Shown here piece after piece: positions 1,202 to 62,794 of a stretch of 64,000 nucleotides of DNA. Under the pieces are notes generated by a model. The model had not been told where the DNA came from. It did no database searches and saw only the letters and a program-made list of their open reading frames with translations. The number at the start of each line of letters is the position of its first letter. Positions within the stretch are counted from its first letter, which is position 1. The translations under genes and the position numbers were made by a program. The stretch is from Trichosphaerium sp. ATCC 40318 (lineage: Eukaryota; Protista; Tubulinea), in contig JALMLS010000210.1 of the NCBI GenBank assembly GCA_038496445.1, positions 1 through 64,000 on the forward strand. Reading direction: 5' to 3'.

Positions 1202-4200
1202 TTATAAGTTGTTGTCGGCTTCTTGTTCTTTGTCTGATGGTGTCTTTTTAGGACCAATCTATTCAATTACATTAGAAATAATAACTTTTAATACTGTATA
1301 AAACGTACCAAAGAGAGTACTACAGGAAGTAACACTAGAGCATGCAATACACCCAAAAGTGTTATGCTGAAAAATTGACGGAAGAAAACTTGAAAGATGA
1401 ACGACTTCGAAAACGCTAGTACAAGTACAGCTAAAAATGTTGATACAGCGCCATTCAATACTGCTCCGCCAACATCAACAAGCTTTAAAAACACCAAGAG
1501 TTAGCAAATAAAACAGCAAAGACACTTAAAATCAAAACGAGTAAAAAAAGAAACAAAAAAGAATACTTACTGCTTTGTAAATCCTTTCATCATTGCTTCC
1601 ACTCTCTTGTAGGTACGCATGGCCAATATGAGTTGAATAATCGACTGCAATACCAACCGCAAGAACCAAGTTAATAACGGACACCTAAACCCACGTGGGT
1701 CAGCACAAAACACAAAAATGTTGTAAATTGTTTTTCGAATACGTACAACGTCTAGATTGATACTCCATAGCCACATGACACCAAAAATATCGATAAGAGT
1801 CATCAACACACAAACAAATACAGTCTAGGAAAAAAAATGAGCTACTTTGCAAATCTCGAAGTGTTTTGTTTCCTTGTACGCACTACTGACACAAAAAGGT
1901 TTCCTAGTAGTAGAACAGTGACTATGAATACCGCTGCAAGTGCTAGTAAGAGATTGACAAGAATCTCTCTTTGGATGATGGCATATTGATCAAACTCCAA
2001 AAAGCTGAAAGAGTAAGGGTATGCATGAAGTCCTGAGTTGTCCACTGTGTTTCTGATACTTCTTGTAGCATCTACTTGATCAAGTGCTTTAGTAAGTGCA
2101 ATCAATCTAGAGTACATCCTAGAAGCACGAATAGCTGTTTGAGAACCTGAATAAAGTCAGAAATCATGAAACTTGCAGTACATTATTTGTTTTCTAGTAC
2201 ATACCATTTTGGAACGTGATGTCATTGCTGTATCTTGCTCCTTCTGTCAAAAGCCAAGAGCTGAGTGTGGAGTGCCATGTTTCGGTATCATTTGGGGCTT
2301 GATTCGTACGATTAAGGTAGCCTTCGAAATCTATAAACCATCCAGTAACAGCTAAAAAAAACCATTTAGTTGTTGATCTTTGTACAAGAGGCTAGTCGTA
2401 CATGATTCGACAAACTCGTTCGAATTGACTTCTTCTATCATCCCCAGAACCCTGTCCTTCATTTCAAAATGATCAAACTCTCTGGTGACAAGAAAAATTG
2501 GTACTCTGTCATCTTGGAAGAACGAATCTTCTACCTCAGAGTATTCTAAAAAACAGTCTTAGAACCAGACAAGGTCGAAAGCCAAAAAAACGTACCTAAA
2601 GCATAAGAATCACTTGGCAAGAAAAATACAGGATCGAACTCAGGTTGTGTTTGGATGACACCGTAAATACCAATACCCAAAAATACAATGAACACGAAAA
2701 TCTGTGAAAGACTATTAGGAAAAATATCTGGTGTGACAGAAGAAAAAGCTGACGTACAACGATAACTTTGGCGATGTTCCACTTTAATAGGTATTCAGCG
2801 TAATAATGCCAAACTCGTCCGACGAAAGTCTCTAATTTGCCTGCTTTCTTTTCTTCTTCAGAAGGCTTATTAACACTGCAACAACAACATTCTCTCCTGC
2901 GGCCTTTCTGGCGACGTGTATCAAGTGCCAAAATGGCTGTGAATAGTGTAACTTGAAGCAAGTATACTAGAGCCACACCAATAGATGCGTATTTACAGAA
3001 TGAACTGAGAGCAGGTAATACAGTAATACTACCAATAGCAAACGCAAGTAAATCGGTCAATGATGTTACAGTAACTAAATTGTGAGTAAGCACAAAACAT
3101 CAACTCCAAAACTCAAAACGTACTTGCTGCACCAGCAGAGCTAAGCGCTGAAGCAACGCGCTTTACACTTGAATCTTTTGGGTTTGTACGATCCAATGCG
3201 TTTACGCTAAAGAAAGTTAGTACTGGTAGAGTTAAGCAAAGGTTAAAAAAAGAACTGGAAAAAAAGCTAAACTAGAAAATCAAAGTGTTGATGACGTACA
3301 TGATGAACATATCATCTACACCAATACCAAGTAACAAAAAAGGTAATACAGATTGTACAGGTGCGTAGAAAAAGCCCATGGCAGATGCAAGACCAAAAGA
3401 TCCACCAACACCCATGCCAATAGACAAGATACCACACAAAGGTACGACAACTGAGAAAAAAGTAAGAAAATTGTACCGAATCAAACTCCGAGAGATGTAC
3501 CTCGTGTCTTAACTGTATGTAGTTTTGTGAACATGAGAAGGACATATGATATGATCAAGAAATATCCAATACCCAAAAGTTGTAGATCTCCACTTAGAGC
3601 ATTAGAAAACTCATCACCAAATGATTTCTACAAAAAAAAAATTAGTAGGCGATGTTGAAATAAAAAACACGTGCCTCAGCGTTTGTAAATAGTTCAAAAT
3701 TTTCAAAGTTTACGTTCAAGGTAAGCGCAAGGAAAACATCTTCTTCCCAGGTTGTCGCTGGTAAATCTACAAAATCGCCATTCTGAAAAACCTCCCTGTT
3801 CTCAAGTGTGTACGAAAAGAAAAGTGCTCTACCGCTAGCACGACCGTTTTCCTCAGTGTAGCCACTAATCAAAGCCTTTAAGTCAGTATCATTGACTACA
3901 GCATTGGCAACACTTTGTTGGACATCTGGATCATTATTTAAAGCGATCTCATCGAAATCCCAGACGGACTAAAAAATATTAAAAAATTCATTGAAGACTT
4001 AAAAAAAAATCATAGGTCGGTTTTTGATCCCACCAAAAAAAAAACGTACCAGTATTGATCTTAGGATACAATTATAGAAAGAGTCTTTTAAACAAAGAGA
4101 AGTAAAATTCCACTGTTCGCCTTCCACCTATTTTATTGTGAGTTGTTTCTAACGTGTCTAACGTACTACAGAAGTAGAATGTATGGTTGTTTTTACGTAC

Positions 4201-11373: not shown

Positions 11374-13923
11374 ATGAGCAACTCGACTGCTCTTCTTACA
11401 ATATTCTTACTCTCAGCTATTTCTATTGTATCTAGCTGTACGTACAAGTGATATTTTTTACACAGAGTAGTCCTGAAGAGTAAACTTATACTGTTTTTTT
11501 AGCCGTCTTTCAAGCAGCTATCATTGGAGATCAAACATGTAGGCGAAACTCTGATACAATGGGCGTACCTCTAAACACGCTCACGTGGGGTGATGACGGA
11601 AGTAGATTCTCAGTTATTAAGTTCAGGATTTTTACCAACGAAGGTGGCTTAGTCCCAAGTGGATCTACCATTGACTCTGCTACTTTAACTTTCACTGGCG
11701 AAAATGATGGCGAATACCGCGGAAATATTTATAGATCAGCTGTTAACTGGGCCGAGAATACTGTCACCTACAACAACTTTGGTGCTTCTTCTGGAGCTGA
11801 TACTGAAGACTTTGATGGTCCTTCAGTCGCTGAATTACCTGACACAAGAAGGAGTAGAGAGATCACTGTAGATGTTACAAGCGCTGTTAGAGCATGGAAT
11901 AGCGGCCAAAGCAATTATGGTTTCGTCATTGTGCCAAGTACGTTCTCTTTTTTGCCTTAGAAATAACAAGTAGTTACTAACTGTTATGTTTTTTAGATGG
12001 TAACCGCAGAGGCCATTCTTCAGTATACTCGTCAGAATCGCAAGATAGTCCAGTGCTTGAAATTACAGTCCGCCCAACGTACCAAGGATATGATGGCAAT
12101 GGTAATAACCTTCAAAATCCTTCATACGGAGCTGTAGACGCTCCTCTATTACGTCAAGTTATGGGTGCTAACGGCAATATTGTTATACCAACATCATACC
12201 AGGATGGTCTTTCTTCAGTACGTCACAACAGCCGATTTTTGAAACTAACTGTGTCACTAGCCACGTGAATTAGATGCTAATGGAGACCCTCTACCTTCAG
12301 CACGGCAAGTAAGTAATCTTGTCGCCAACCACATTGAGCAAAGATCACGTGCAAGAAACCCAAGAAGGTACTTTCATGACTGAACCTGTCGTTTTACCGC
12401 AACTCTTGCTAATCTAAATTCTAGACATACTGATTTATTGACATATTTTGGGCAATTCTTGGACCACGACATTGATTTAACACCAGAAGGCGGAGCAGAA
12501 TTTAATATTCAAGTACCAGCAAATGATCCAGTCTTCTCTGGCGAACTTCATTTTACAAGAGCTGTACCAATATCTGGAACTCCAGCGACAGATCCTCTAG
12601 AGCATCCTAACATAATCAGCGCATTCATTGACGGTACGAACGTATACGGATCTGATCTCGACCGTGCTACTAAACTGAGAACAATGTAAGACAACATAAC
12701 AATCTTTGAAAGTGTCTTTTTTACTAACTTAGAAACTTAGGAATAACGGACTTATGAAGACTAGTCCAGGAGACTTTTTGCCTTATAATCTTGACGAACT
12801 CAACCTAGAAATGGCTAATATTGGATTTGTTCCCGACAATGAAACATATGTTGCTGGAGATGTCCGTGCCAATGAAAACGCTGTATTAATGTCTCTTCAT
12901 ACTTTGTTCGTAAGAGAACACAACAGGATTGCCGGAGAACTTCAAACAGAAAACCCAACATGGTCTGACGAGAGACTATACCAAGAAGCCAGAATGCGTG
13001 TTATTGCAACCCTTCAATCGATTACAATGTACGAATGGCTTCCAGAGGTTATTGGAAACGTACCAAACTACAACGTATGTCTAGCTATCATTTTTTATCA
13101 TGTACAAAGTGCTAATTTTTGTTTTACAGGGATACAATGACAACGTTAATCCTGGTATCATGAGCGTATTCTCTGGAGCAGCTTTCCGTTTCGGACACAG
13201 TTTAATCAGCACTGTAATCCATAGAGTCGACCCAGACTTTCACTCTATTCCACAAGGACCTCTTCTACTCCGTAACGCTTTTTTCAACCCTGTATCTATT
13301 CAATACGGTATTGGTTCTATTCTTAGAGGTGTCATGATGCAACAACATGAAGCTGTTGATGTACTCATCAGTGACGATTTGAGAAACTTCCTCTTTCAAA
13401 GCGTAGGTGGTGGAGGAGCAAACAGACACGATTTGTTTTCTTTGAATCTCCAAAGAGGCAGAGATTTGGGTCTTCCAGACTATAACACACTCCGTGCTGC
13501 ATATGGATTCAACAGAGTTAACGACTTCTCCGATATTTCAAGCGACCCTGCTACTGTTAATGCACTTGCTACTGCATATGTCAGTGTTAACGATATCGAT
13601 CCTTTCGTTGGTGGTCTTGCTGAAGGTACTGCTAACATGGTTGTATATTATCACGTGTCTTATTTCTATTCGTAGATCATCTTCCAAACAGTAAAATGGG
13701 TGAGTTGTTCACAGCAATCCTAAGAGACCAATTTGTGAGGTTGAGAGATGGTGATAGGTTCTGGTTTGAAAATAACCGCTTTTCACAACAAGAAACACAA
13801 CAGTTGAGAAATACTAAAATGTTGGATGTCATCATTCGTAACACTGATACAAGACAGAGTACAGGCCGGGATTTCGTTTCCGCTTTCTCTCTCAGTGATG
13901 CATCAAATGTACCTAATATGTAA
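11374..13923 (+). CDS. Secreted heme peroxidase (peroxidase-cyclooxygenase superfamily) with N-terminal DNRLRE/CBM96-like domain
   Basis: Signal peptide [27 protein letters not shown]-like 'IDSATLTF...[10 protein letters not shown]...[21 protein letters not shown]...YSSE...PVLEIT'. Peroxidase motifs YDGNGNN, GQFLDHD (distal His), [25 protein letters not shown] (proximal His), [21 protein letters not shown]. Confidence 0.93.
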
Positions 13924-16804: not shown

Positions 16805-17370
16805 AGCTGCTGATGACACGTACCTATTAGGGTACAATGTCCTCACATAGGCGGCCTGTGAAGGTCGCCACTGTGGTTACAAGAGAAGTAACTCAATTAA
16901 CATATTCATACTGCATTGCTGCTGTACACATGGAAGAAGAGTACTTCTTTCGTGGCTGCTTATGACATGGACCTGTTAGGGAGCAATGTCCTTACAACGG
17001 TGGATCATGGTCACCGCTGTGGTTACAAGAAGAGTAACTCGACTAACATATCCATACTGCATTGCTGCAATATATTATATATGATAGAATAGTAGTACTC
17101 TTTTGCAGGCTGCTTACTTACCAACATCACAAAGATGCTGAGCTGCTGATGGCATGCACTTGTTAGAGCGCAATGTCCTTACAACGGTGGATCTCGGTCA
17201 CCGCTGTGGTTACAAGAAGTAACTCGATTAACATAGCCATACTGCATTGCTACAGTACCATATGAAAGAAGAGTTACATTCTTGTACACTAGCATCACAA
17301 AGATGCTGGTGCTGTTGTTGTTGTCACAAGGACAAAGTCATGAAAAGCCCACAACTCGATTAACATTTCT
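16805..17370 (+). repeat. Three tandem ~150-185-bp structured units plus a partial fourth; candidate ncRNA array
   Basis: Units start at ~16805, ~16954 and ~17141. Each has GCTGCT(G/T)ATG, TTAG, CAATGTCCT, a variable hairpin, GTGGTTACAAGA..GTAACTC, TAACATA and CATACTGCATTGCT. The strand is inferred. Confidence 0.85.
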
Positions 17371-22107: not shown

Positions 22108-24055
22108 ATGGAGGCACACAACATCTTGGTATTGCGAAAGGTTGTTTTTGATGTACTTGAGACTTGATCTAAGCCGTTTTTAGAAAAAACAGATTCTTGA
22201 AGATATATTGGCTTGGCAGGTCAGAAAACAACCTTGTTTCGCGTCTACATCAATATTAGAAGCATGTCAACAGTAAGTGGAGCTTAGCTTTGTTTGCTTT
22301 CAAAGCTAAAACAGCACCAATCGTGTACCCACAGTTTCTTGACCTAACATCAAACTTTTAGTGTTCATCAATACATCGTCACTCACAACGATCCATTCAT
22401 ATCACTCCGATCCAATACTGTATCAACCAATACCATTTCCACAATCGCCAAGAGCACATTCACTAGCTTCACGGGAAATGAGATAGATTCTACGACATTC
22501 ACTTCCTTCACAGGTGATGAATCAGAGATTCCAACAACTTCTACTGTTTGAATAACCTTGTTCCTTTGTTCTTTAGAGCTACCAACTGAGATTGTATGGC
22601 ACGTGATAAGCTTTCTAGATAGCAAATGTATTCTTTCAATATCACAAACAGCAAAACCGTATGCGAAGTATTGCCAGAGTCAATTCACGTGGCTTTTCGA
22701 AATTAATAGAGTAGGTTGCTATTTTGTTGTTTCTAACTTACTGGTTACCAAGAGCAAAGCAAACACGTATGGGTTCCTATGCAAGTATTACAAGGCTGGT
22801 GTGAATCCGTACACTTTAAACTGGTCACAATCCAAAAGAAAGTTCACAAGCGCATCAAGAAACGAAACAAAAAACAAAAGTCAACTGATAAAAAGATTAC
22901 TAAAACAATTGACAGCGACCGCAAGTCGTCGTTTACAAAAACGGATATAATTTTCCTTGGTGACAATATGCACATGTGCGTTGGAGGTAATGATAAAAAT
23001 AACTTAAAGAAAGAATATTGACGCATTGTAGGTTTAGCATCAGTATTGAAATTAATGGACTTTATTCCGTTCAAGAAATGTATTCAAAAATATACAGTTT
23101 CTATTGCATTGAACTCTTCAAATCGCAAACCTAAGGTACAGACCCCTTGAGCATACACCGCAGTTTACACGATATCTAGAGTAAATGTGCAAAGGCAATC
23201 AAATCTTCAGTTGCTCAAGAACTGATTGCTGAAGGCCTTGACGCCATTGATGTCACTCAAAATAAGCACTCCAAATAGTAAGTTAAATCTAAACTTCTTG
23301 TCATAATGAACTATAGTTTCGAAGGTGCCGCTTCAAGGATACTGAGCTCAATATACGTGGTTACTGCAGAAGACATTAGGAACATGCCCTGCGCACTTCT
23401 ATACGCGGACGTACCTCTGAACTACAACGTCTCAATCGGAGGATGGAGTACAAGGTTAAAAAAAAACCAACTTTTTCGATTATTTACTCTATTAGGTTGA
23501 CATTGTACCCTTCAATGTCTCAAGAAATCTTCCTCAATCTTGTACATGACGAAAAAACATATGGAGAAGGCTATCTTATCATCTACAATATAGTTCTTGG
23601 TGAATACCGAGTGTCTGATCCAATCTTTGGCACAAAACTACACAAATCAATACATGAGTTCTCATTGTGGTGTAACATCCTTTGTAAATCCACCCATTAT
23701 GATATTGGTGTATTCATTTATACAAGTGAACACGTGGTGCCTTCTGATTTCTGTGAGAAATTTCCAGATTGCCATCAAGGTAATAATCGGCTTTAAGTTT
23801 GTTGTTTTATTTGATGTTCAGTTATTTTTGTTCTAAACCGATTTATTAGCCACAAATGAGTCTATCTATGATTATGTTGTAGGTATTTTACGTTCACATA
23901 TTGCAGAAAGATCATACGCTGATATCAATGGGAACCAATATAGCCCTAGCACATATTTTAAACTGTACTCACCTCAATACTGTCTTGTTGATATTCATGA
24001 AATGTACACCGCTGGTATTTCGTCTAGATTATTGTATAGTATGACATTAATATAA
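22108..24055 (+). pseudogene. G-gamma-like (GGL) + F-box + degenerate G-alpha fusion, copy 1; 1-nt frameshift near 22850 (pseudogene or assembly error)
   Basis: Similar exon structure and high similarity to 48042-50010. Alignment to that copy shows one missing base in ACA AGC -GC ATC AAG, and the G-alpha-like part continues in the shifted frame (KSTDKKITKTIDSDRK...IIFLG). Confidence 0.7.
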
Positions 24056-29778: not shown

Positions 29779-30652
29779 CTAATTTGCTATCAATTTGCCA
29801 TCTTCATCCCATGCTTTACTCTCTCCGACTTGTTTACCATTAACATAGTTTCTTAGAAAGTTCAACTGACCATTAGAATACCACATCTTGCTCTCTCCTT
29901 CCTTTTGACCATTGACATAATGCTCAAAGTTCCATAAGTAACCATTAGAAAACCACCTCTTGTAATCCCCTTGAAGCAAACCTCCAGTGTAATAACATTG
30001 CATTTCCATTTGTCCATTGTAACACCAACATAGGTATTCTCCTTCCATAATACCATCAACGTACGTTTTCTTACAAGCCAATTGACCATTTCGGTACCAT
30101 TGCTTGTGTTCTCCGATAGGTACACCCTCTTTATATTTTCCACAAAAATTCGGCTGACCACTGTTGTACCAAGTTTTACATTCTCCATCATGCTCACCAT
30201 TAATGAAATGGCATTGACTCTTCAATTGGCCATTCCAAAACCATTTCTTTCGTTCTCCTTGTAATTTATCATTTAAATAATGACCACATTCACGTATTCT
30301 CGTTGAAGAATAATACCACTGTGTGTATTCTCCTTCTCGTTTGCCATTGATGTAAAAATATTGTTTATTCAGTTTATATCCATCACCGTGCCAGTTGTTG
30401 CAGTCTCTCTCTTTTTGCATCCATTTACCATTTTTTTGTAAGTCAGCATCAAATCTCGTTGTAGTTGCTGTGTACTTTGATAATAAAGGCCATTTTAGAT
30501 AAATATCAAAACCTAGATCTATAATATCAAGGTGCAGCTCCAAAGGAATGTTTAATAGATGGTTATGCTCCTGTTCTACTCTGGAGGGATTTAACTAAAT
30601 AATATTACTTTTTAACCATTTTAGTTACTCTTACTTTGTGTTTCGCTTTCAT
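29779..30652 (-). CDS. F-box-like + MORN2 repeat protein, copy 2
   Basis: First exon MKAKHK, a short intron, then 'HLLNIPLELHLDIIDLGFDIYLKWPLLSKYTATTTRFDADLQKNGKW' and about 9 MORN2 repeats in one exon. Confidence 0.88.
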
Positions 30653-35077: not shown

Positions 35078-37537
35078 ATGCAAGAAAGCGGACTTCCTGA
35101 GTCGCTTGAATCAGACTTTAAAACAGAAGATTTCTTCACACAACCATTACAACATCCAGAATTTTTGAATGATATCACCACAACAGATTTTCCACCAATT
35201 CATTCTGTACCGCAAGTTCGTCAGCTAGAACCCGAGAATCAGTGGTACAAGTACTACACAGATGAAAAGGAACAACGTGAGAAGATGCAACAAGCGATGA
35301 TTGGTCTTGAAACACTACTGTACGATTTTTTTTTCGTTGTTTTGACGGCTCTTTTTTTGGCGGTCTCAAGTGTCGCTTTCAATGAATATGACTCAAAAAA
35401 CAATAGGAAAAATTACCAAAGACAATTGGCAAGCCTTCAAAAAGAACCTTCACCTGACCTTCTTCCAGGGCATTCTCAACCAGAAATGTACGCACATTTA
35501 ATTATTTCCAAATTGAAAAAAAAAAACTGACAATGTCATATAGCCAGCCAACACTTGAAATTGTAGATGATGAGGAATACCCATTCTGCAAATTTACTGT
35601 ACCTACACTATCTAAAAACATACAGTATGTGCTTATTTCTATAACAAGGTAACAGAGGGCACTTTAAGACCTTTCCCGGCACTTGCAGTAAATGTTAAAG
35701 ACAATCTAAAGAATATTCTAATTAAAGCTGAACCAGCTGCAAATTACAAGTATGCTTGCTTGTAACTTCATCTTGTTCGGCTCTAACACCTTCGTTCAGT
35801 TTCACGCTTGAGAACCATATTGCTTTCTATAAAGTAAAGGATCAAAAGACAATCACTCATCGCAAGGTACGTTGCACTTCAAAACTAGTAAAGTCAATAT
35901 TTCTTTACTAATTGTTTTCACAATAGTTGGGAAGTGTTATAATTTTTGATGATCTGCGTGTTTCTGGTGTTGGCACTGCAGATGGAGATGTCATACAAAT
36001 AGAATTTAAGCTATATAGTGTGGATGGTCCTAAATCAACGTTACTTACATCGCAGACATCTCCAGATATTCGAGTATTCAATCATTCTCAGTATCTTCCA
36101 GGTAGCTATTGGACTTTCTCACAAAAAGTTAATCTCGCTTAGCACCTATCATTACAAAATTAGTACCAAACTGGGCTACCGTCGGAGAACAGCAGAAAGT
36201 TGAAGTATATGGACCTTTGTTTTTGAAAAAAAATATCCTTGAGTGTCAGGTGCTTGAAGAAAGCGGTGAACAATTTTCGCTTATTAGGTACAAACAGTTC
36301 TCAAGTGACTCCAGCTAACTCCTCCTTAGAAAAACAGATATTCAAAGGAAACGAAATTGTTTCCATAGTTTCGCTTTTGATGCCCCTGAACATCCTCAAG
36401 GACGTGTACTTATAAGACCAAGGTATGAAAAAAGAGATTGTGGAGTCGGCAAAGAATTCTTTTACCTTGGTACTACCAAACCTACCTTCTGGCTATATTC
36501 TTATTTATTGTTAGTACCTCCCTGTGGTGGTAAGCTCCCTGTTTCAAGCCTGATCACAAGTGGGGATTTCAGTGGCATATCTGATGGGATGTTTGACGAT
36601 AAATCCTCTTTTGATGTACCTATAACACTTGGTCTTGAGCAAGACGATTTTGGTTTTATCCAACTGCTTTCAGATTCTTATGAAGGCAACTTTCAATCTC
36701 TACAAGTACGCTTCAACAGTAACCCATTAAATAATCTTTTGCTAACCATTTTGAATAGAGGTCACTGTTTAATTCTAATGTTGTGCAATGCATAAATAAG
36801 CGAGATGTGAACGGTTGTACAGCTCTTTTTTGGGCATGCTACCGTGGTAATGAAAAGTGTGTCAAATTATTATTGAGATCTAAAGCCAACCCAAACATTG
36901 CTAGTTTTTATGGACAGACGCCATTACATGCTGCTGTAGTAGCAAGATCAGAAGATATAGTACAGCAACTACTGAAAAACAATGCAGACCCAAATAATGC
37001 AGACAAAACTGGAACAACTCCTTTGCACTTGGCGTGTGCTACTGGCACGTGCGTTGAAGCCTTGGCAGAATCCGTACAAGACTTGATGATACTCGATAAT
37101 GACAGAATGAGTCCAATGCAAACCGCAATTATGACAGGCAATGAAGGTACGGAATATAAACTGTTTGTTACAACAATGACTTACTTGATGTTTCAGGTGC
37201 CTTCTTTCATATAGCCCAACAAATTTTAAAGAGAACTCAATCATCCATTGAAGATATTGTAGAGTTTAGACATAAACGTCTTAACAGCTCCTTAGATTCT
37301 GGTAACAACACAAAAAGTAAACATTTAAACAACCTCTTCGAAACACGTGTATGCTTTACGTCAGATAAAGATTGTGACTCTACACCTGCATCTCCAAGAG
37401 TACATCATCGACTTTCTGATTATAAAAGAAAGAACATGGTTATTGGACTAAAGAAGCAAGGGAACCCAAAGCTAAAGAACAATGCAACAACAAAAACACT
37501 ATTTAATCCCAAAGTCATTTTCTCACAGCTATTTTAA
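35078..37537 (+). CDS. Putative transcription factor: Ig-fold (STAT/Rel/p53-like) DNA-binding domain + IPT/TIG + ankyrin repeats
   Basis: 'LRPFPALAV...IIFDDLRV...IQIEFKLY...TSPDIRVFNHSQYLP', then 'PIITKLVPNWATVGEQQKVEVYG...FDAPEHPQGRV...FFYL' (IPT), then ankyrins 'NGCTALFWAC', 'GQTPLHAAV', 'GTTPLHLAC'. Confidence 0.7.
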
Positions 37538-47304: not shown

Positions 47305-48041
47305 TGCTTGCTTTAATGTATTTCAAATATAAACAGACTTAGATACTTGTACATCTTAAGGCGCGAAATTGTCTCTGAGAGATAAAAAAAAAAGACAGAA
47401 AAAGTACGTGATTTAGTTAAAAGTATAAATAGATGATAAATCAAGCAATTCACACTTTGCACGCATGTGATAATAACACTGCCCTTCTGTTGTCTTTTGT
47501 TATACCGTTTTATGGATTCTTTGTACGGCCAACAACTCAGGCTCCAACAATGGCGTCAACAACCAACAAACCCGTCACCACAAACCGATAACAAGGACCG
47601 ATATCCATGCCATCGCTAACTTCATCAGCCAACAGCCTCGAGTGTACACGTTGTATCTTGTACATTATCTACTGTTGTATTCCGCCATCTTTTATTGCAT
47701 GGAGTTCAGGTCCAAAGAGCAAGTAGATGTAAGAAGAATTTCGTTACTAGCATAAAAGCTGATTAGCAACAAATATTTTAAAGCCTTTCGTTTTTGCTGC
47801 GGCTGAAAGCCCACAACTCACTGTGTTTTTATATGAATACGCGAAAAAAATTAGCGAACAAATATATCACGTGATCTAGAACGCAAATATCCGAAAGAGA
47901 AAACTAAAATTGAAGTAAAAGTACAGTAAATCTACAAAGGGACGCAAATACCTAAAAGAGAATTAAATTGAAGTAAAATTGAAGTAAATCTACAATCTTG
48001 TGTGTACAAATAAAGTCAATACCACAAACCACAGTCAAGTA

Positions 48042-50010
48042 ATGGAAGCCTACGACATCTTGGTTTTGCGAAAGGTTGTTTTTGATGTTTTAATGCACTG
48101 AAGACTTGGATCTAAGCCGTTTGTTTAGAAAAAACAGATTCTTGAAGATATATTGGCTTGGCAGGTCAAAAAACAACCTTGTTTCGCGTCTACATCGATA
48201 TTGGAAGCATGTCAACAGTACGTAACGCTTGTTCGTTATTCAACCTCAAAGATATACCGCATACACATTAATATGCGTGTTTTATACGATTTACAGTTCT
48301 TGCGACAGCCTAACAAAAACGTTTAACTTTTAGTGTGCATCAATACATCGTCTCTCACAATGATCCATTCATATCACTCCGATACAAGAAGCGTGGTTCC
48401 AATTCTACCAATGCCATCACTTCCATAAACACCAAGGGGATGACATTCACTAACTTCACAGGTAGTAATGAATCAGAGATTCCAACAACTTCTGCTGTTT
48501 GAAATAACCTTGATATGTAGAGCTACCAACTGAGATTGTATGGCATGTGATAAGCTTTCTAGATGACAAATGTATTCTCGCGATATCACAAACAGCAAAG
48601 CCGTATGCGAAGTATTGCCAGAGTCAATTCACATGGCTCTTAGAAGTCAGTAGAGTAAGTTGGGCTATTTTTTGATACTCTGTACTATTATCTGTTTATG
48701 ACTTACTGTTGATTTATCAAGAGCAGATCTAGCACATACGCATTCTTAAACAAGTATTACAAAGCTGGTTTGAATCCATACACGGTTCAGAAGACACTCT
48801 CCAAACTAAAGTACACAAACCACATGAAGAAAAGAACGAAACAACAAAACTTAACTGACCGAACAATCCACAAACAACTTAAAAGTGAAAGGGAAAAAAA
48901 CCAGTGTATAAATATCGTTTTCCTTGGCAGCAAAGTACACATGTGTCTTGGAGGATTTGCAAGGTCGATAGTGACACCAGACTTTTCTCCATTCAAGAAA
49001 TGTATTCAAAAGTACACACTTTCTGTTGCTTTGAAGGCATCAAAACACAATCCTCAGGTATCGAACAACACCTTTTTTAACTTACACCACAACTTACACG
49101 TGATATCTAGAGTAAATGTGCAAAGGCAATCAAATCTTCAGTTGCTCAAAAACTGATTGCTGAAGGCCTTGATACAATTGATGTTGAAGATGATGAGCGA
49201 GCCAAATAGTACGGTTTTTTTTCTTTGATTGCTATGTGTTTGTCTCACTAACAATGTGATAGTTTCGAAGAAGCTGCTTCAACGATACTGGATAAAGAAT
49301 ACATAGTGATACCAGAACATATTGAAAACATGCCTTGTACACTCCTACATACTGACAAACCTCTTGAATATATTAGCAATATGAAATTTACTTTTCGGTA
49401 AGAACAAAAGCTGATATTGATAGGGCTTTATACCTTTTTATAGATTTAAAATGTACCCTTCAATATCTCGCACACTATTCCGAAAAGCTTCCCATGTTGT
49501 ACAAGGTTGTTCCTTAATATTATACAACATTGTACTTGGTGAATACCGTATACCTGATCCTATCTTTGGCACAAAACTACACAAATCAATACATGAGTTC
49601 TCGCTGTGGTGTAACATCCTTGATAAAACTCGAATTTGTGGTGTGGCTATATTTATCTACAAAGACGACCATTTAATACCTACTGAGTTCTGTGAGAAGT
49701 TCCCAGATTGCCCTCAAGGTAATCACTTACTCCTTAACCCCTTTTGGATTCACACTCTTGTTTCACTTACGCTTTCTTTGTAGCCACAATCAAGTCAATA
49801 TTTAAGTATCTGGTAAGGTTATTCACTTCTCATATGATAAAAGGAGCATACTTAGATGATGATACCCATATATTGAGTAAAGCAAACTCATATTTTCATT
49901 ACTACTCAATTCTTGACTTCGCTGACAACGTAACTAAAACTTTCAACCAAATTCTGGTTTCCTCAACTGTAGATTCTACAATGGGACTTGATTGTTACAC
50001 GTTGGTATGA
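48042..50010 (+). CDS. G-gamma-like (GGL) + F-box + degenerate (P-loop-less) G-alpha fusion, copy 2 (apparently intact)
   Basis: MEAYDILVLRKKKQILEDILAWQ...TSILEACQHVHQYIVSHNDPFI (GGL-like), FTELPTEIVWHVISFLDDKCILAISQTAKPYAKYC (F-box), then TDRTIHKQLKSEREK...INIVFLG ... ILDKEY ... LILYNIVLGEY ... KLHKSIHEF ... IFIYKDD ... FPDC ... YFHY ... MGL (G-alpha-like order of motifs). Confidence 0.8.
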
Positions 50011-50495
50011 ATTGTTAGTTGGTTAAAACCAATATTAATAAAAGACTTATGCTTACTCATATTTTGACTTGGCCGTTTTAAGTTGAATAGTACTTCTAGC
50101 ATTTTGACTAGAAGTTTGGTAACAACCAACTTTGCTAACAATGAATGTTCATGCTTGCAATTCTATATAAACCTATGAGGGTAAGCGGGGTACTTACCAA
50201 GTGCGATAGAAGTGAGAGAAATGTTCATTTGTTCCTTCTTCCTTGTTGACCTTATTGTTGTTTCAAAATCATTTTAGGCTTCATGTTGATGAATGCAATA
50301 TCACGTGATACGATTCAACAAAAAACTGAAAAATTAAAGCACAAGTTGTTGTATACAAACTCTTTTTTTATTACTATTGTTTCATTATTTGTTTCGCCAC
50401 AAGTCTCATGTACTACATTTTACGGAAACGATGTACACACCTGCCAAGATCAAGGCGAAATCGGAGTTTTTTTTTTTACCTTGAAAAAAAAAAAC

Positions 50496-53400
50496 TTAAC
50501 TCATTGTGAAGCAAGTTTGTGCGTTTTCTACAGCCTGTAGTAGACGTTGCTTCATTATTATCTTAGAAGAGTAGTCTGGTAATTTAAGGTAATAGAAGCA
50601 CGTATTTACACTTGGCAAGTATTGATCTGACGGGAAGCAGTCCTTGCGAACTATCGTCAATTTTGGATTCAACGATTTGAAACCTAAAGCAAAAAATGAT
50701 TAAACACATGCTGTCATAGATGATTTTTTATCTACGTACCACCGATAGGTAACCGGACAGATCCAGTTAAAAATCGTACAAATAACTTACGTTCCTTTGG
50801 TGTAAGTTCTGATAGAATCTCAACAAGGAATTTGACAGCATTGCTAAAGAAAGAAAAAAAAGTTAGAAAAAAGCCAAAACAAAAAAAAAATCTCGTTCAA
50901 ACGATCACAAACCGCTGCGCACCTGGTGCTACTGTATCCAGATCCTACACTTATATTATCAGCTATAACTTGCTTAGCCCATTCCTCATTTTGAGTTTCA
51001 TCTGCACCACATAAAAGTACTTGAAGCTCAGGTATAGAAAAGGCTTGTAGATGTTGAATTGCAAAAATCTCATTAAACCCTTTTCTGAAAGCATTGACTT
51101 GTTTCTCAATGCCAGACTTAACCAAAGCATCGAATAGCAAGTCAAGGTACTCACATAGATTATCAATAGTGACAATCTCTTCACCGTTATCCTTGAGCGC
51201 CCAATTCTCATGACCAGGTACAACAAACTCAAGCTCCATATCCTTAATCTTACCACCATGATACCTGAGTTTATCAATTTTACCTTGTTTTACTTTATCC
51301 GATAGTTCTTCATCTTCTTTGATCTCTTTAACTTGAAGAGCAACAGCAGATAGTTGTTTGAGTATATCAGCTTGATGAGCACTCATCATAGCAGTTAGAT
51401 CATCCATTGAAAGCTGAATACCAAGAATTGCTTTAAGGAAACCAGTGCTGAAAGGTAAATCAAGTAATCGTCCATCAAGTATAGCCTTTGCAACAAAAGT
51501 ACCCAAAAAAGTGAAATGATGATCAATAAGTGTTTTTACAGCATCAGTTGCTTCTTTTGGATTCAATGGTTTTGGGAACAAACCATGTTTCGAAATGACA
51601 TACTTTTCTTTGTTGTTCTCGGCATCAACCCAAAGGCTTAAGTCTCTACGCTGAATTTCATGAGAAGCAAGAGTATAGAACTCACAAGTAGGACCCTATG
51701 TATTTTCGTCAGAGCAGGTAAAGCAGAGTACAAAAGAGAAGAGAAAAAAATGAAGAAAAAAGAAGGAAAAACTTACGAGACCAGTGCCAACTTCATCTCT
51801 GAACTCTACTTCAAGTATTGCGTTTGGATTCTCGGCACAAAGTGCCATTACTTTCTGTGCTGATTCAAGCGCTTTTTCGCGAATAATACGGACCTATTAA
51901 AGCAAAGTCAGTCAAGGAAAATACACACCCGAAAAAGTTATGAAGAGCAAGGTTATGTAGGATGTCTGTACCTTTTGCTTTGTCATCGGTGAAAACTTCA
52001 GGCTAACGTTAGGTTGCCTCATCTCAATAGCATGCATGACACCACGTTGGATACCACTAGAAGTAGCTTTGAAGAAAAAGTTCCTCGTGTTAAACTGGAA
52101 CAAGAAAGGACAATGTTTAACGACTTTACGACACCAAGAAGGAAGTGAAGAAGCGCAAAGCAGTAAAGGATCTGATACTTGACGTGTCAAAGACGACGAA
52201 AGTTTAGGTGACAAGAAAATACTACTATCAAGAGGTGACACATCGTTCTAAAGTAGTAATAAGTTAGTACTTGTTTTATCTTCAAAAAAAAAGTTTTACA
52301 GAAGTTTTACAGTCCTCAGAGCGAAGCTCTTTGTCAGCACTGGGAATATGCGCAGTAATTAAGCGATGACGTACAGGCCACAGGGTTGGTCTAGCATTGC
52401 AGGCATGCAGAATCTTCAACAAGAGTAATACTTTGGCTGTATTTTCGGTTGTAGGGAATGAGATTTTAGACTTCAATACTTTTTCTAAAGCTTTATCTGT
52501 ATTGACAGATGCTCCCTCGACTATTGATAAATCATTAGCTACTCAAGTTCGTACTTATTAATGGATGTCTTTTAACGTACTACCACAAAAGTTGACTTGG
52601 ATTTTATCCATACGTTCCACATGAAGTGGAATCTCAGATGAATCCTCTAAAGATTTTTCATCTTTTTCATCATCACGTATCTTATACTCAAGTTTATGAG
52701 TCGTTCTCCAACACTGAGAAATCTCAGATGATGTAATGACAAGATGATCATCTCCTTGAGAAACAGACTTATCTAGATACCAAGTGTCAGAGCAAGAAAC
52801 AACAAATACAAAGAAGAAAAAGGAGCTACTGTCGCATAAGTTTACCTTTTCTTTGCATGTCCTGTAAGATAGCTTGAAACAGAGTCAAGTTTTTAGCTAA
52901 CAGACGGCCATTCAAGTATATAGATAACTTATCAGCAAGCTTAGGATCTTGATCAAGACATTCATCAGGATCAACGTCATCTTCAGGAATATTAATTTCA
53001 CCCAAAGCATCTTCGACTTCTTCCTCATCAGAAGAGTCATCAAATGCCTCAATCTGCACCTACGGAACTCTCTTAGCAACAAAAACCTAAAAACAAATAG
53101 TAAAGAAGACAATACAACGTACAGTTGTCATAGAAAGCATTCTTAGATCATCTTGAGGTACACGTTGCATTTTACGATTATACCTTGTTCTATTGTTGAT
53201 TTGTTGCATTGTCTTTAAGTTTGCAGTATAACCATCTCTAGCAAAGAATCCATGAGATAACTCAACAGTATCAGAACCTTCTTTGAAAGCATTCTCAAGA
53301 ATCTCAGTAGTAACATTGTCATACAATGACCAAGATCCTTCATTATTCCAACGCCATATACCAGGCTTGTAAGCTTCTTTTTCTTCAGCTTCATCTTCAT

Positions 53401-61744: not shown

Positions 61745-62794
61745 ATGACAGCGAAACGCAAAGTAAGAGTTCAAACTCGCCAAAATTAACTGTTTTAGCT
61801 AAATATCAGAGAACAAGAGCATAACCATCTATTAAACCTTCCTTTGGAGCTGCACCTTGATATTATAGATCTAGGGTTTGATATTTATCTAAAATGGCCT
61901 TTATTATCAAAGTACACAGCAACAACAACGAGATTTGACGCTGACTTACAAAAAAATGGTAAATGGTTGAAAAAAAAGTATGAAGCACGTGATCCAAATA
62001 CAACACAATTAGTATGTCAAGAGTATTGGTTAAGTGGTAAGCTCAATGGAGAACGTACCAACTGGAACGGTAGAATAATGCTTAACCAAGGTCATTACGT
62101 CAATAATGCACAGGAGGGGGAGTACAAGGAGTGGTATTCACACAATGGAAAATTAAAGAAAAAGTGTTTTTATACCAACGGTCATCTTGAAGGAGAGTTC
62201 AAAACGTGGTATGACAATGGCCAATTAAGCGAGCAGCATACTAGTGTAAATGGTAAACTAGAAGGAGAATACAAACAATGGCATCATTCAGGACAACTGA
62301 GCACACTATGTTATTTTGTTAATAATTTGTGCGAAGGAGAGCACACAATGTGGTATTATAGTGGTCAAGAACAGGCACTGGGCAAATTTCTAAAAGGCAA
62401 ACGTGTAGGAGAACATAACCATTGGCATTCTAATGGTCAATTGAAAACTAAAGAAACGTTTGTTAATGGAGTTCATGAAGGATCATACACAAGCTGGCTT
62501 GATAATGGAAATATGGAAAGACAGTGCAAATACGTAAAGGGTCATGTTGAAGGAGAAGAGAAGACATGGTATATGAACGGTAACTTAAGGAGTGTTAATC
62601 ACTTCGTACATGGTAGAAAAGTAGGAGAGAGCCAAGAATGGTATGAGAACGGTGTATTAGAGAAACAATATCACAGCGTCAACGGTAAATTGGACGGAGA
62701 GTTCAAGACGTGGTACAGAGATGGCATTTTGGCGACTCATACTGTTTATGCAAATGGTACAGACATTGGACATAAGCAAGGCATATTAAACTAA
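61745..62794 (+). CDS. F-box-like + MORN2 repeat protein, copy 3
   Basis: First exon MTAKRK (alternative in-frame ATG at 61709), a 36-nt intron, an N-terminus nearly identical to copy 2 ('HLLNLPLELHLDIIDLG...KNGKW'), then about 11 MORN2 repeats. Confidence 0.88.

Follow-up and report, generated by a model that had tools for sequence, protein, structure and literature searches.

Our analysis of a 64,000-nucleotide stretch of contig JALMLS010000210.1 from Trichosphaerium sp. ATCC 40318 (hereafter the window; G+C content 37.6%) points to an expressed gene that probably belongs to a lineage-restricted family of amoeba F-box proteins, in which the F-box would connect to Skp1 and the SCF complex and the long C-terminal tail would act as the substrate module. 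The gene gives rise to an mRNA of nine exons that encodes a conserved head of 55 residues, a low-complexity linker, an F-box and a tail of ~330 residues evolving under purifying selection. The preliminary description of this locus had presented it as a candidate ubiquitin-ligase adaptor built from heterotrimeric G-protein parts, with a G-gamma-like head and a G-alpha-shaped tail on either side of the F-box. Half of this proposal stands, in that a genuine F-box is found in an expressed and constrained gene, whereas the construction from heterotrimeric G-protein parts found no support in exon-level tests.

Reading of the region 47500-50600 in three frames revealed, as described before, a single spliced ORF at 48042-50010 on the forward strand. 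It comprises nine exons (E1 to E9, all on the + strand) with 1455 coding nucleotides, that is, 484 codons and the stop, separated by eight introns of 46-116 nt each, every one of them bounded by GT..AG. E1 (48042-48074) supplies 11 codons starting with the ATG at 48042, which is the first in-frame ATG past a stop; nine of these 11 residues are kept in a second copy of the gene (copy 2, see below), while the DNA that precedes the start codon is down to 48% identity between the copies. Copy 1 also has, just before its start codon, a direct tandem repeat of ~57 nt (47881-47995, the units 82% identical), which likely sits in the promoter or the 5' UTR. E2 (48129-48217) encodes the conserved N-terminal segment that forms the first half of the supposed G-gamma-like part, with 28 of its 29 residues identical in copy 2. 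E3 (48334-48461) encodes the last part of this segment (VHQYIVSHNDPF) and then a linker rich in Ser, Thr and Asn, the length of which differs between the copies. The F-box falls in E4 (48521-48654), which is 89% identical to its counterpart in copy 2 with a dN/dS of 0.19. The tail opens with E5 (48722-49057), where a lysine-rich helix leads to a hydrophobic strand (INIVFLG) and on to GSKVHMCLGG, a sequence that does not form a P-loop. It continues through the conserved, helical-looking E6 (49111-49208; 82% identity with copy 2) and E7 (49263-49397) to E8 (49444-49718), the most conserved part of the tail, which harbors a near-invariant core of 36 residues (LILYNIVLGEY...SLWCNIL). E9 (49784-50010) is open up to the stop codon at 50008-50010 and is the fastest-evolving exon, sharing only 34% identity with copy 2 at a dN/dS of 0.52.

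Transcript evidence agrees with this gene model. Contigs from two public RNA runs (X1 and X2) were aligned to 47700-50400; neither expression levels nor transcript ends can be read from such contigs. After applying the cut shifts stated by the alignment tool, we found the joints of introns 2-7 at the modelled positions: 48217>48334, 48461>48521, 48654>48722, 49057>49111, 49208>49263 and 49397>49444. The first of these, across intron 2, is present in X2, the joints on both sides of E6 occur in X1 as well as in X2, and E7 is spliced as modelled. In X2 a loose end marks the junction between E1 and E2, and intron 8 is excised in a paralogue-like contig among those from X1 and X2. Since splice joints run across the gene, the head, F-box and tail segments belong to a single mRNA, just as the preliminary description had supposed. 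X2 additionally contains unspliced contigs over introns 4 and 8 (48612-48832 and 49689-49847) alongside the spliced forms, which reflect either intron retention or genomic DNA in the library. Numerous variant contigs, 90-99% alike, also occur in this run; they stem from multiple expressed paralogues or from alleles, and suggest that several paralogues are expressed.

Of the three modules originally proposed, the F-box is the one that searches recovered. When each exon was compared separately with Pfam, where the families for those modules are PF00631 for G-gamma, PF00646/PF12937 for the F-box and PF00503 for G-alpha, only the F-box emerged, and neither G-gamma nor G-alpha. E4 alone matched the F-box-like family PF12937 over profile positions 4-41 of 47 with an E-value of 1.4e-4; its score of 22.0 bits is slightly below the Pfam gathering cut-off of 24.3 and was obtained with a single exon. 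Two further F-box models, F-box_4 (PF15966; E 0.003) and F-box (PF00646; E 0.004), matched the same exon. Among PDB sequences the top match was the F-box of FBXW7, aligned through the pattern LP.E...V.SFL....L...Q.....W, and the motif is kept in copy 2 too. In the PDB searches with E2-E9, one exon at a time, no other match was obtained. The identification of the F-box thus stands confirmed.

What the protein might do follows from its likeness to SCF F-box receptors (PF12937/PF00646), exemplified by FBXW7. It shares with them an F-box of ~40 residues placed N-terminally to a larger domain, as well as membership in a lineage-specific, fast-evolving gene family. F-box genes commonly form such families, lineage-specific C-terminal domains are common among them, and the reception of substrates is a common role of their products. 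It differs from these receptors in that its C-terminal domain belongs to no Pfam family, WD40, LRR and Kelch included, and in that the F-box is preceded by a conserved segment of 55 residues. Judging from its sequence, the F-box would dock the protein on Skp1 within an SCF ubiquitin ligase, and by analogy with other F-box proteins carrying family-specific C-terminal domains, the tail would be the substrate-binding module. Structurally, the tail may be an alpha/beta domain, and it could be what heavy erosion has left of a GTPase or a G-alpha.

The head had been read as a G-gamma-like segment, and together with the tail it had been thought to mimic a heterotrimer that clamps G-beta or docks on receptors and delivers its catch to SCF. 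We consider such a heterotrimer mimic extremely improbable. The N-terminal 55 residues are, to be sure, highly conserved between the two copies, and they include the pattern S..L.A......H..DPF, which loosely recalls the DPLL region of G-gamma. Yet only three of the nine residues of the G-gamma consensus given in the preliminary description are matched (S, D and P). Because intron 2 splits the segment, its halves were searched as E2 and E3, each alone, and neither half matched Pfam G-gamma (PF00631) or any PDB sequence at E-values up to 10. The resemblance of the head to G-gamma therefore appears to be at chance level. Its conservation, moreover, runs on into intron 1 (95% identical between the copies), which points to gene conversion, and the proposal additionally requires the unproven G-alpha reading of the tail.

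The second copy, previously noted ~26 kb away, is indeed there. It is a paralogue situated at 22108-24055 (+), 25.9 kb upstream, in which tblastn matched all nine exons in the same order and on the same exon plan. The duplication is limited to the gene itself, and the flanks of the two copies are not duplicated. DNA identity between the copies varies along the gene in a mosaic fashion: it amounts to 85-97% over E1, intron 1 and E2, and to 84-90% over intron 3, E4 and intron 4. Since the introns of this 5' part are also highly identical, the head and F-box part (48042-48721 versus 22108-22752) probably underwent gene conversion, confined to that part, so that the conservation seen there would be partly due to conversion and not all due to selection. 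In the 3' part the exons are 53-85% identical (61-85% for E6-E8) versus only 45-56% for introns 6-8, the mark of selection acting on the coding sequence. The dN/dS ratio between the copies is below 1 in every exon. Within the 36-residue core of E8 there are 10 synonymous versus ~5 non-synonymous differences (pS 0.42, pN 0.06), and on this two-copy comparison the core is under purifying selection. The low ratios throughout, together with the pattern in the E8 core, indicate that the tail is a real, constrained protein domain.

Copy 2 has several peculiarities of its own. Its E5 (22753-22990) is 5 nt shorter than that of copy 1, the difference lying between the conserved NPYT and KKR stretches, and as a result the frame common with copy 1 meets a stop near 22948. 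An alternative acceptor AG 2 nt downstream, with the exon beginning at 22755, would leave E5 open, with ~23 codons in a different frame. There is also an extra GT..AG intron at about 22987-23031. Copy 2 would thus be a pseudogene, unless its frameshift is rescued. It might be asked whether the gene described here is itself a decaying or non-functional copy, given that the family evolves fast (E9 being the extreme) and that the 5-nt difference in copy 2 breaks the common frame. However, we find this explanation scarcely credible: the frame of copy 1 is intact over its 484 codons, and it is spliced, expressed and under purifying selection.

The neighborhood of the two copies includes genes of various kinds. 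An exon encoding a HECT-domain ubiquitin ligase (50844-51581, - strand; Pfam E 2.6e-32) is arranged tail-to-tail with the F-box gene, ~0.8 kb past its stop. Two MORN-repeat genes, at 29779-30652 (-) and 61745-62794 (+), are in opposite orientation and have in common a 244-nt stretch that is 86% identical; each is situated 6-12 kb downstream from one of the F-box copies. Self-comparison also revealed tandem units ~150 nt apart and 70-78% alike at 16805-17308. Ordinary neighbors are a gene with a sterol-sensing domain (Patched/NPC1-like; 2596-3093, -), an animal-type haem peroxidase gene (13100-13675, +) and an ankyrin-repeat gene (36783-37214, +).

The nature of the tail calls for a closer look, as the preliminary description had taken it for a G-alpha-shaped region with lost nucleotide motifs. 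According to this explanation, which we regard as possible but doubtful, the F-box is fused to a nucleotide-free G-alpha relic that retains the fold and, by way of surfaces inherited from G-alpha, captures G-beta-gamma, receptors, RGS proteins or effectors and delivers them to SCF for ubiquitination; a G-alpha origin of the tail as such seems about equally tentative. There are points in its favor. The tail resembles G-alpha subunits (PF00503) in size (~326 versus ~352 residues), and it ends within ~6 residues of the G-alpha end. Like them, it has a charged N-terminal helix followed by a hydrophobic strand that ends in LG, and its short resemblances to G-alpha are colinear. In our own chain alignments of ungapped or gapped segments, controlled with shuffled, reversed and decoy sequences, a colinear chain from the N-helix to the C-terminus could be placed along the whole G-alpha HMM, reproducing the alignment proposed earlier. 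The motif strings quoted with that alignment are all literally present in copy 1.

Database searches gave a different answer. The G-alpha tests were run exon by exon. Each exon alone, at E-values up to 10, failed to match the Pfam G-alpha family PF00503, and searched in the same way E5-E9 had no Pfam Ras, Arf or G-alpha match. In an exon-by-exon search of PDB sequences, none of the tail exons matched a G-alpha chain. E6 matched neither G-alpha nor anything else in Pfam, the PDB or hhalign comparisons. A two-copy profile of E8 compared with 1.84 billion protein representatives drew no G-alpha and no true relative, and a metagenome scan with the same profile found no relative either. Three matches of this profile at E ~1e-4 were rejected as repetitive or unrelated, being fibronectin type III, BsoBI restriction endonuclease or sequences without a Pfam domain. 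Feature searches of the ESM Atlas with E8 and E5 reached best scores of 0.77 and 0.79, respectively, which are under the useful range. Such an absence of relatives from both the protein representatives and the metagenome contigs fits a young or fast-evolving family.

For more sensitive comparisons, natural G-alpha genes were taken from metagenome contigs by means of a short P-loop DNA pattern, which yielded 45 full ORFs with the G1 and G3 motifs. The G-alpha reference alignment (A2) and its HMM were based on 34 of these, and 57 G-alpha ORFs made up the set for blastp. With single exons, hhalign placed E5 on the N-helix and first strand (P 0.03), E8 on helix alpha-3 (P 0.33) and E9, out of order, on the helical domain (P 0.11). 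With two-copy profiles, E5 aligned to G-alpha positions 7-42 with P 4e-4, well above its decoys (0.07 or worse), and this speaks for the G-alpha relic. So does the fact that the placements of E7 (155-182) and E8 (197-290) abut. These two placements are, however, matched or surpassed by decoys: E7 gave P 0.05 with decoys down to P 0.013, and E8 gave P 0.31 over 82 columns at 28% identity, with four of five shuffled decoys scoring better. E9 was again out of order, on positions 120-182 of the helical domain (P 0.03). HMMER with the A2 HMM matched only E5 (4.0 bits, P 0.0015) and E9, the latter once more on the helical domain. Among all 2068 ORF pieces obtained from the window in six frames, HMMER ranked E5 of copy 2 first (E 0.38) and E5 of copy 1 sixth (E 3.3). 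In blastp searches against the 57 G-alpha ORFs, E5 (E 0.02) and E8 (E 0.06; 25% identity over 92 columns) were both aligned at the expected places, whereas control exons had E > 1, and this too favors the relic. AlphaFold models of single fragments were of too low confidence for a fold search. The E8 fragment (pLDDT 43) showed strand-strand-helix-strand-helix, and the strand-helix-strand-helix order within it would suit a G-alpha; the E9 fragment (pLDDT 53) showed two helices and no strand.

The controls decide how much weight these resemblances can bear. The chain of E5-E9 scores z 1.9-4 above within-exon shuffles, and values of z 2.3-4 within this range speak for a G-alpha relic. However, exon-wise reversed sequences score nearly as high, because the lysine-rich stretch of E5 fits the charged N-helix in either direction. 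Without E5, the chain of E7-E9 falls to z ~1.0-1.3 and P ~0.1 against shuffles, with single copies or two-copy profiles alike. The apparent significance of the full chain thus stems mostly from the lysine-rich E5 and is not proof. When the tests were limited to the expected profile windows, P values scattered from 0.008 to 0.8 and disagreed between copies 1 and 2, and E9 fitted a wrong region of G-alpha about as well as the expected one. The real G-alpha profile gives E7 and E8 no advantage over decoy profiles, whether reversed or column-shuffled, on which their scores are equal or higher. The one piece that clearly exceeds its decoys is the N-helix/first-strand part of E5, a lysine-rich sequence of low information content. 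Taken with the lack of Pfam and PDB matches, these controls do not confirm the G-alpha-shaped region as more than a chance resemblance.

The loss of the nucleotide-binding motifs was described correctly: at the place of the P-loop (G1, GxGxSGKS/T) copy 1 has GSKVHMCLGG and copy 2 has GDNMHMCVGG, at the place of DVGGQ there is YPSIS and G3 (DxxGQ) is absent, and in place of G4 (NKxD), likewise absent, copy 1 has YKDD and copy 2 YTSE. Copy 2 further has LTLY for FKMY, YTSE for YKDD and YFK for YFH, and it lacks the terminal GL; a paralogue transcript has ERTRIRLT where copy 1 has KFTFRFK. On this comparison, several of the quoted G-alpha motifs (FTF..FKM, YKDD, YFH and the terminal GL) are not family features. 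Their absence from copy 2, and that of FTF..FKM from the paralogue transcript as well, argues against a G-alpha relic, as do weak signals that differ from one copy to the other. Thus, the tail differs from G-alpha subunits in having no significant profile match, no P-loop, DxxGQ or NKxD, and no resemblances common to the paralogues. It also has no myristoylation or palmitoylation site, unlike G-alpha, because the domain is internal. Atypical G-protein alpha subunits are known from plants, in the form of extra-large G proteins. In the literature searched, we found no description of an F-box/G-alpha fusion.

A different use of the F-box is also conceivable, namely that it controls the turnover or localisation of its own tail instead of recruiting substrates, as has been proposed for TbFRP. 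We think this improbable here: nothing in the present sequence speaks for it specifically, and substrate reception is the usual F-box role. What does favor such self-directed turnover is the precedent, the nearest in the literature searched. TbFRP, a protein of trypanosomes (Euglenozoa), combines FYVE, an F-box and a Ras-like GTPase and is rapidly processed, its F-box having been linked to fast turnover (PMC3593210). The two proteins are alike in that a protist F-box precedes a domain with a GTPase fold, a possible one in our case (PMC3593210). They differ in that TbFRP has a recognisable GTPase and FYVE, whereas the protein described here has no detectable GTPase, nucleotide motifs or FYVE.

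Overall, the lineage-restricted F-box family remains our preferred reading. As it stands, the gene adds to the lineage-specific F-box genes whose presumed substrate-binding domain is an orphan, a result that has value for annotation and is unsurprising. The conserved core of 36 residues, which has no relatives elsewhere, nevertheless marks a new protein domain that is worth a structure. The larger proposal, that the tail is a nucleotide-free G-alpha and that F-box/pseudo-G-alpha proteins form an expanded family in this amoeba, bringing G-beta-gamma, receptors or RGS proteins to SCF for ubiquitination by means of inherited G-alpha surfaces, strikes us as rather unlikely. Should the tail nonetheless prove to be a dead G-alpha, the gene would exemplify a naturally occurring pseudo-GTPase put to use as a ubiquitin-ligase adaptor, and it would offer a direct handle on the turnover of G-protein signalling components in amoebae.
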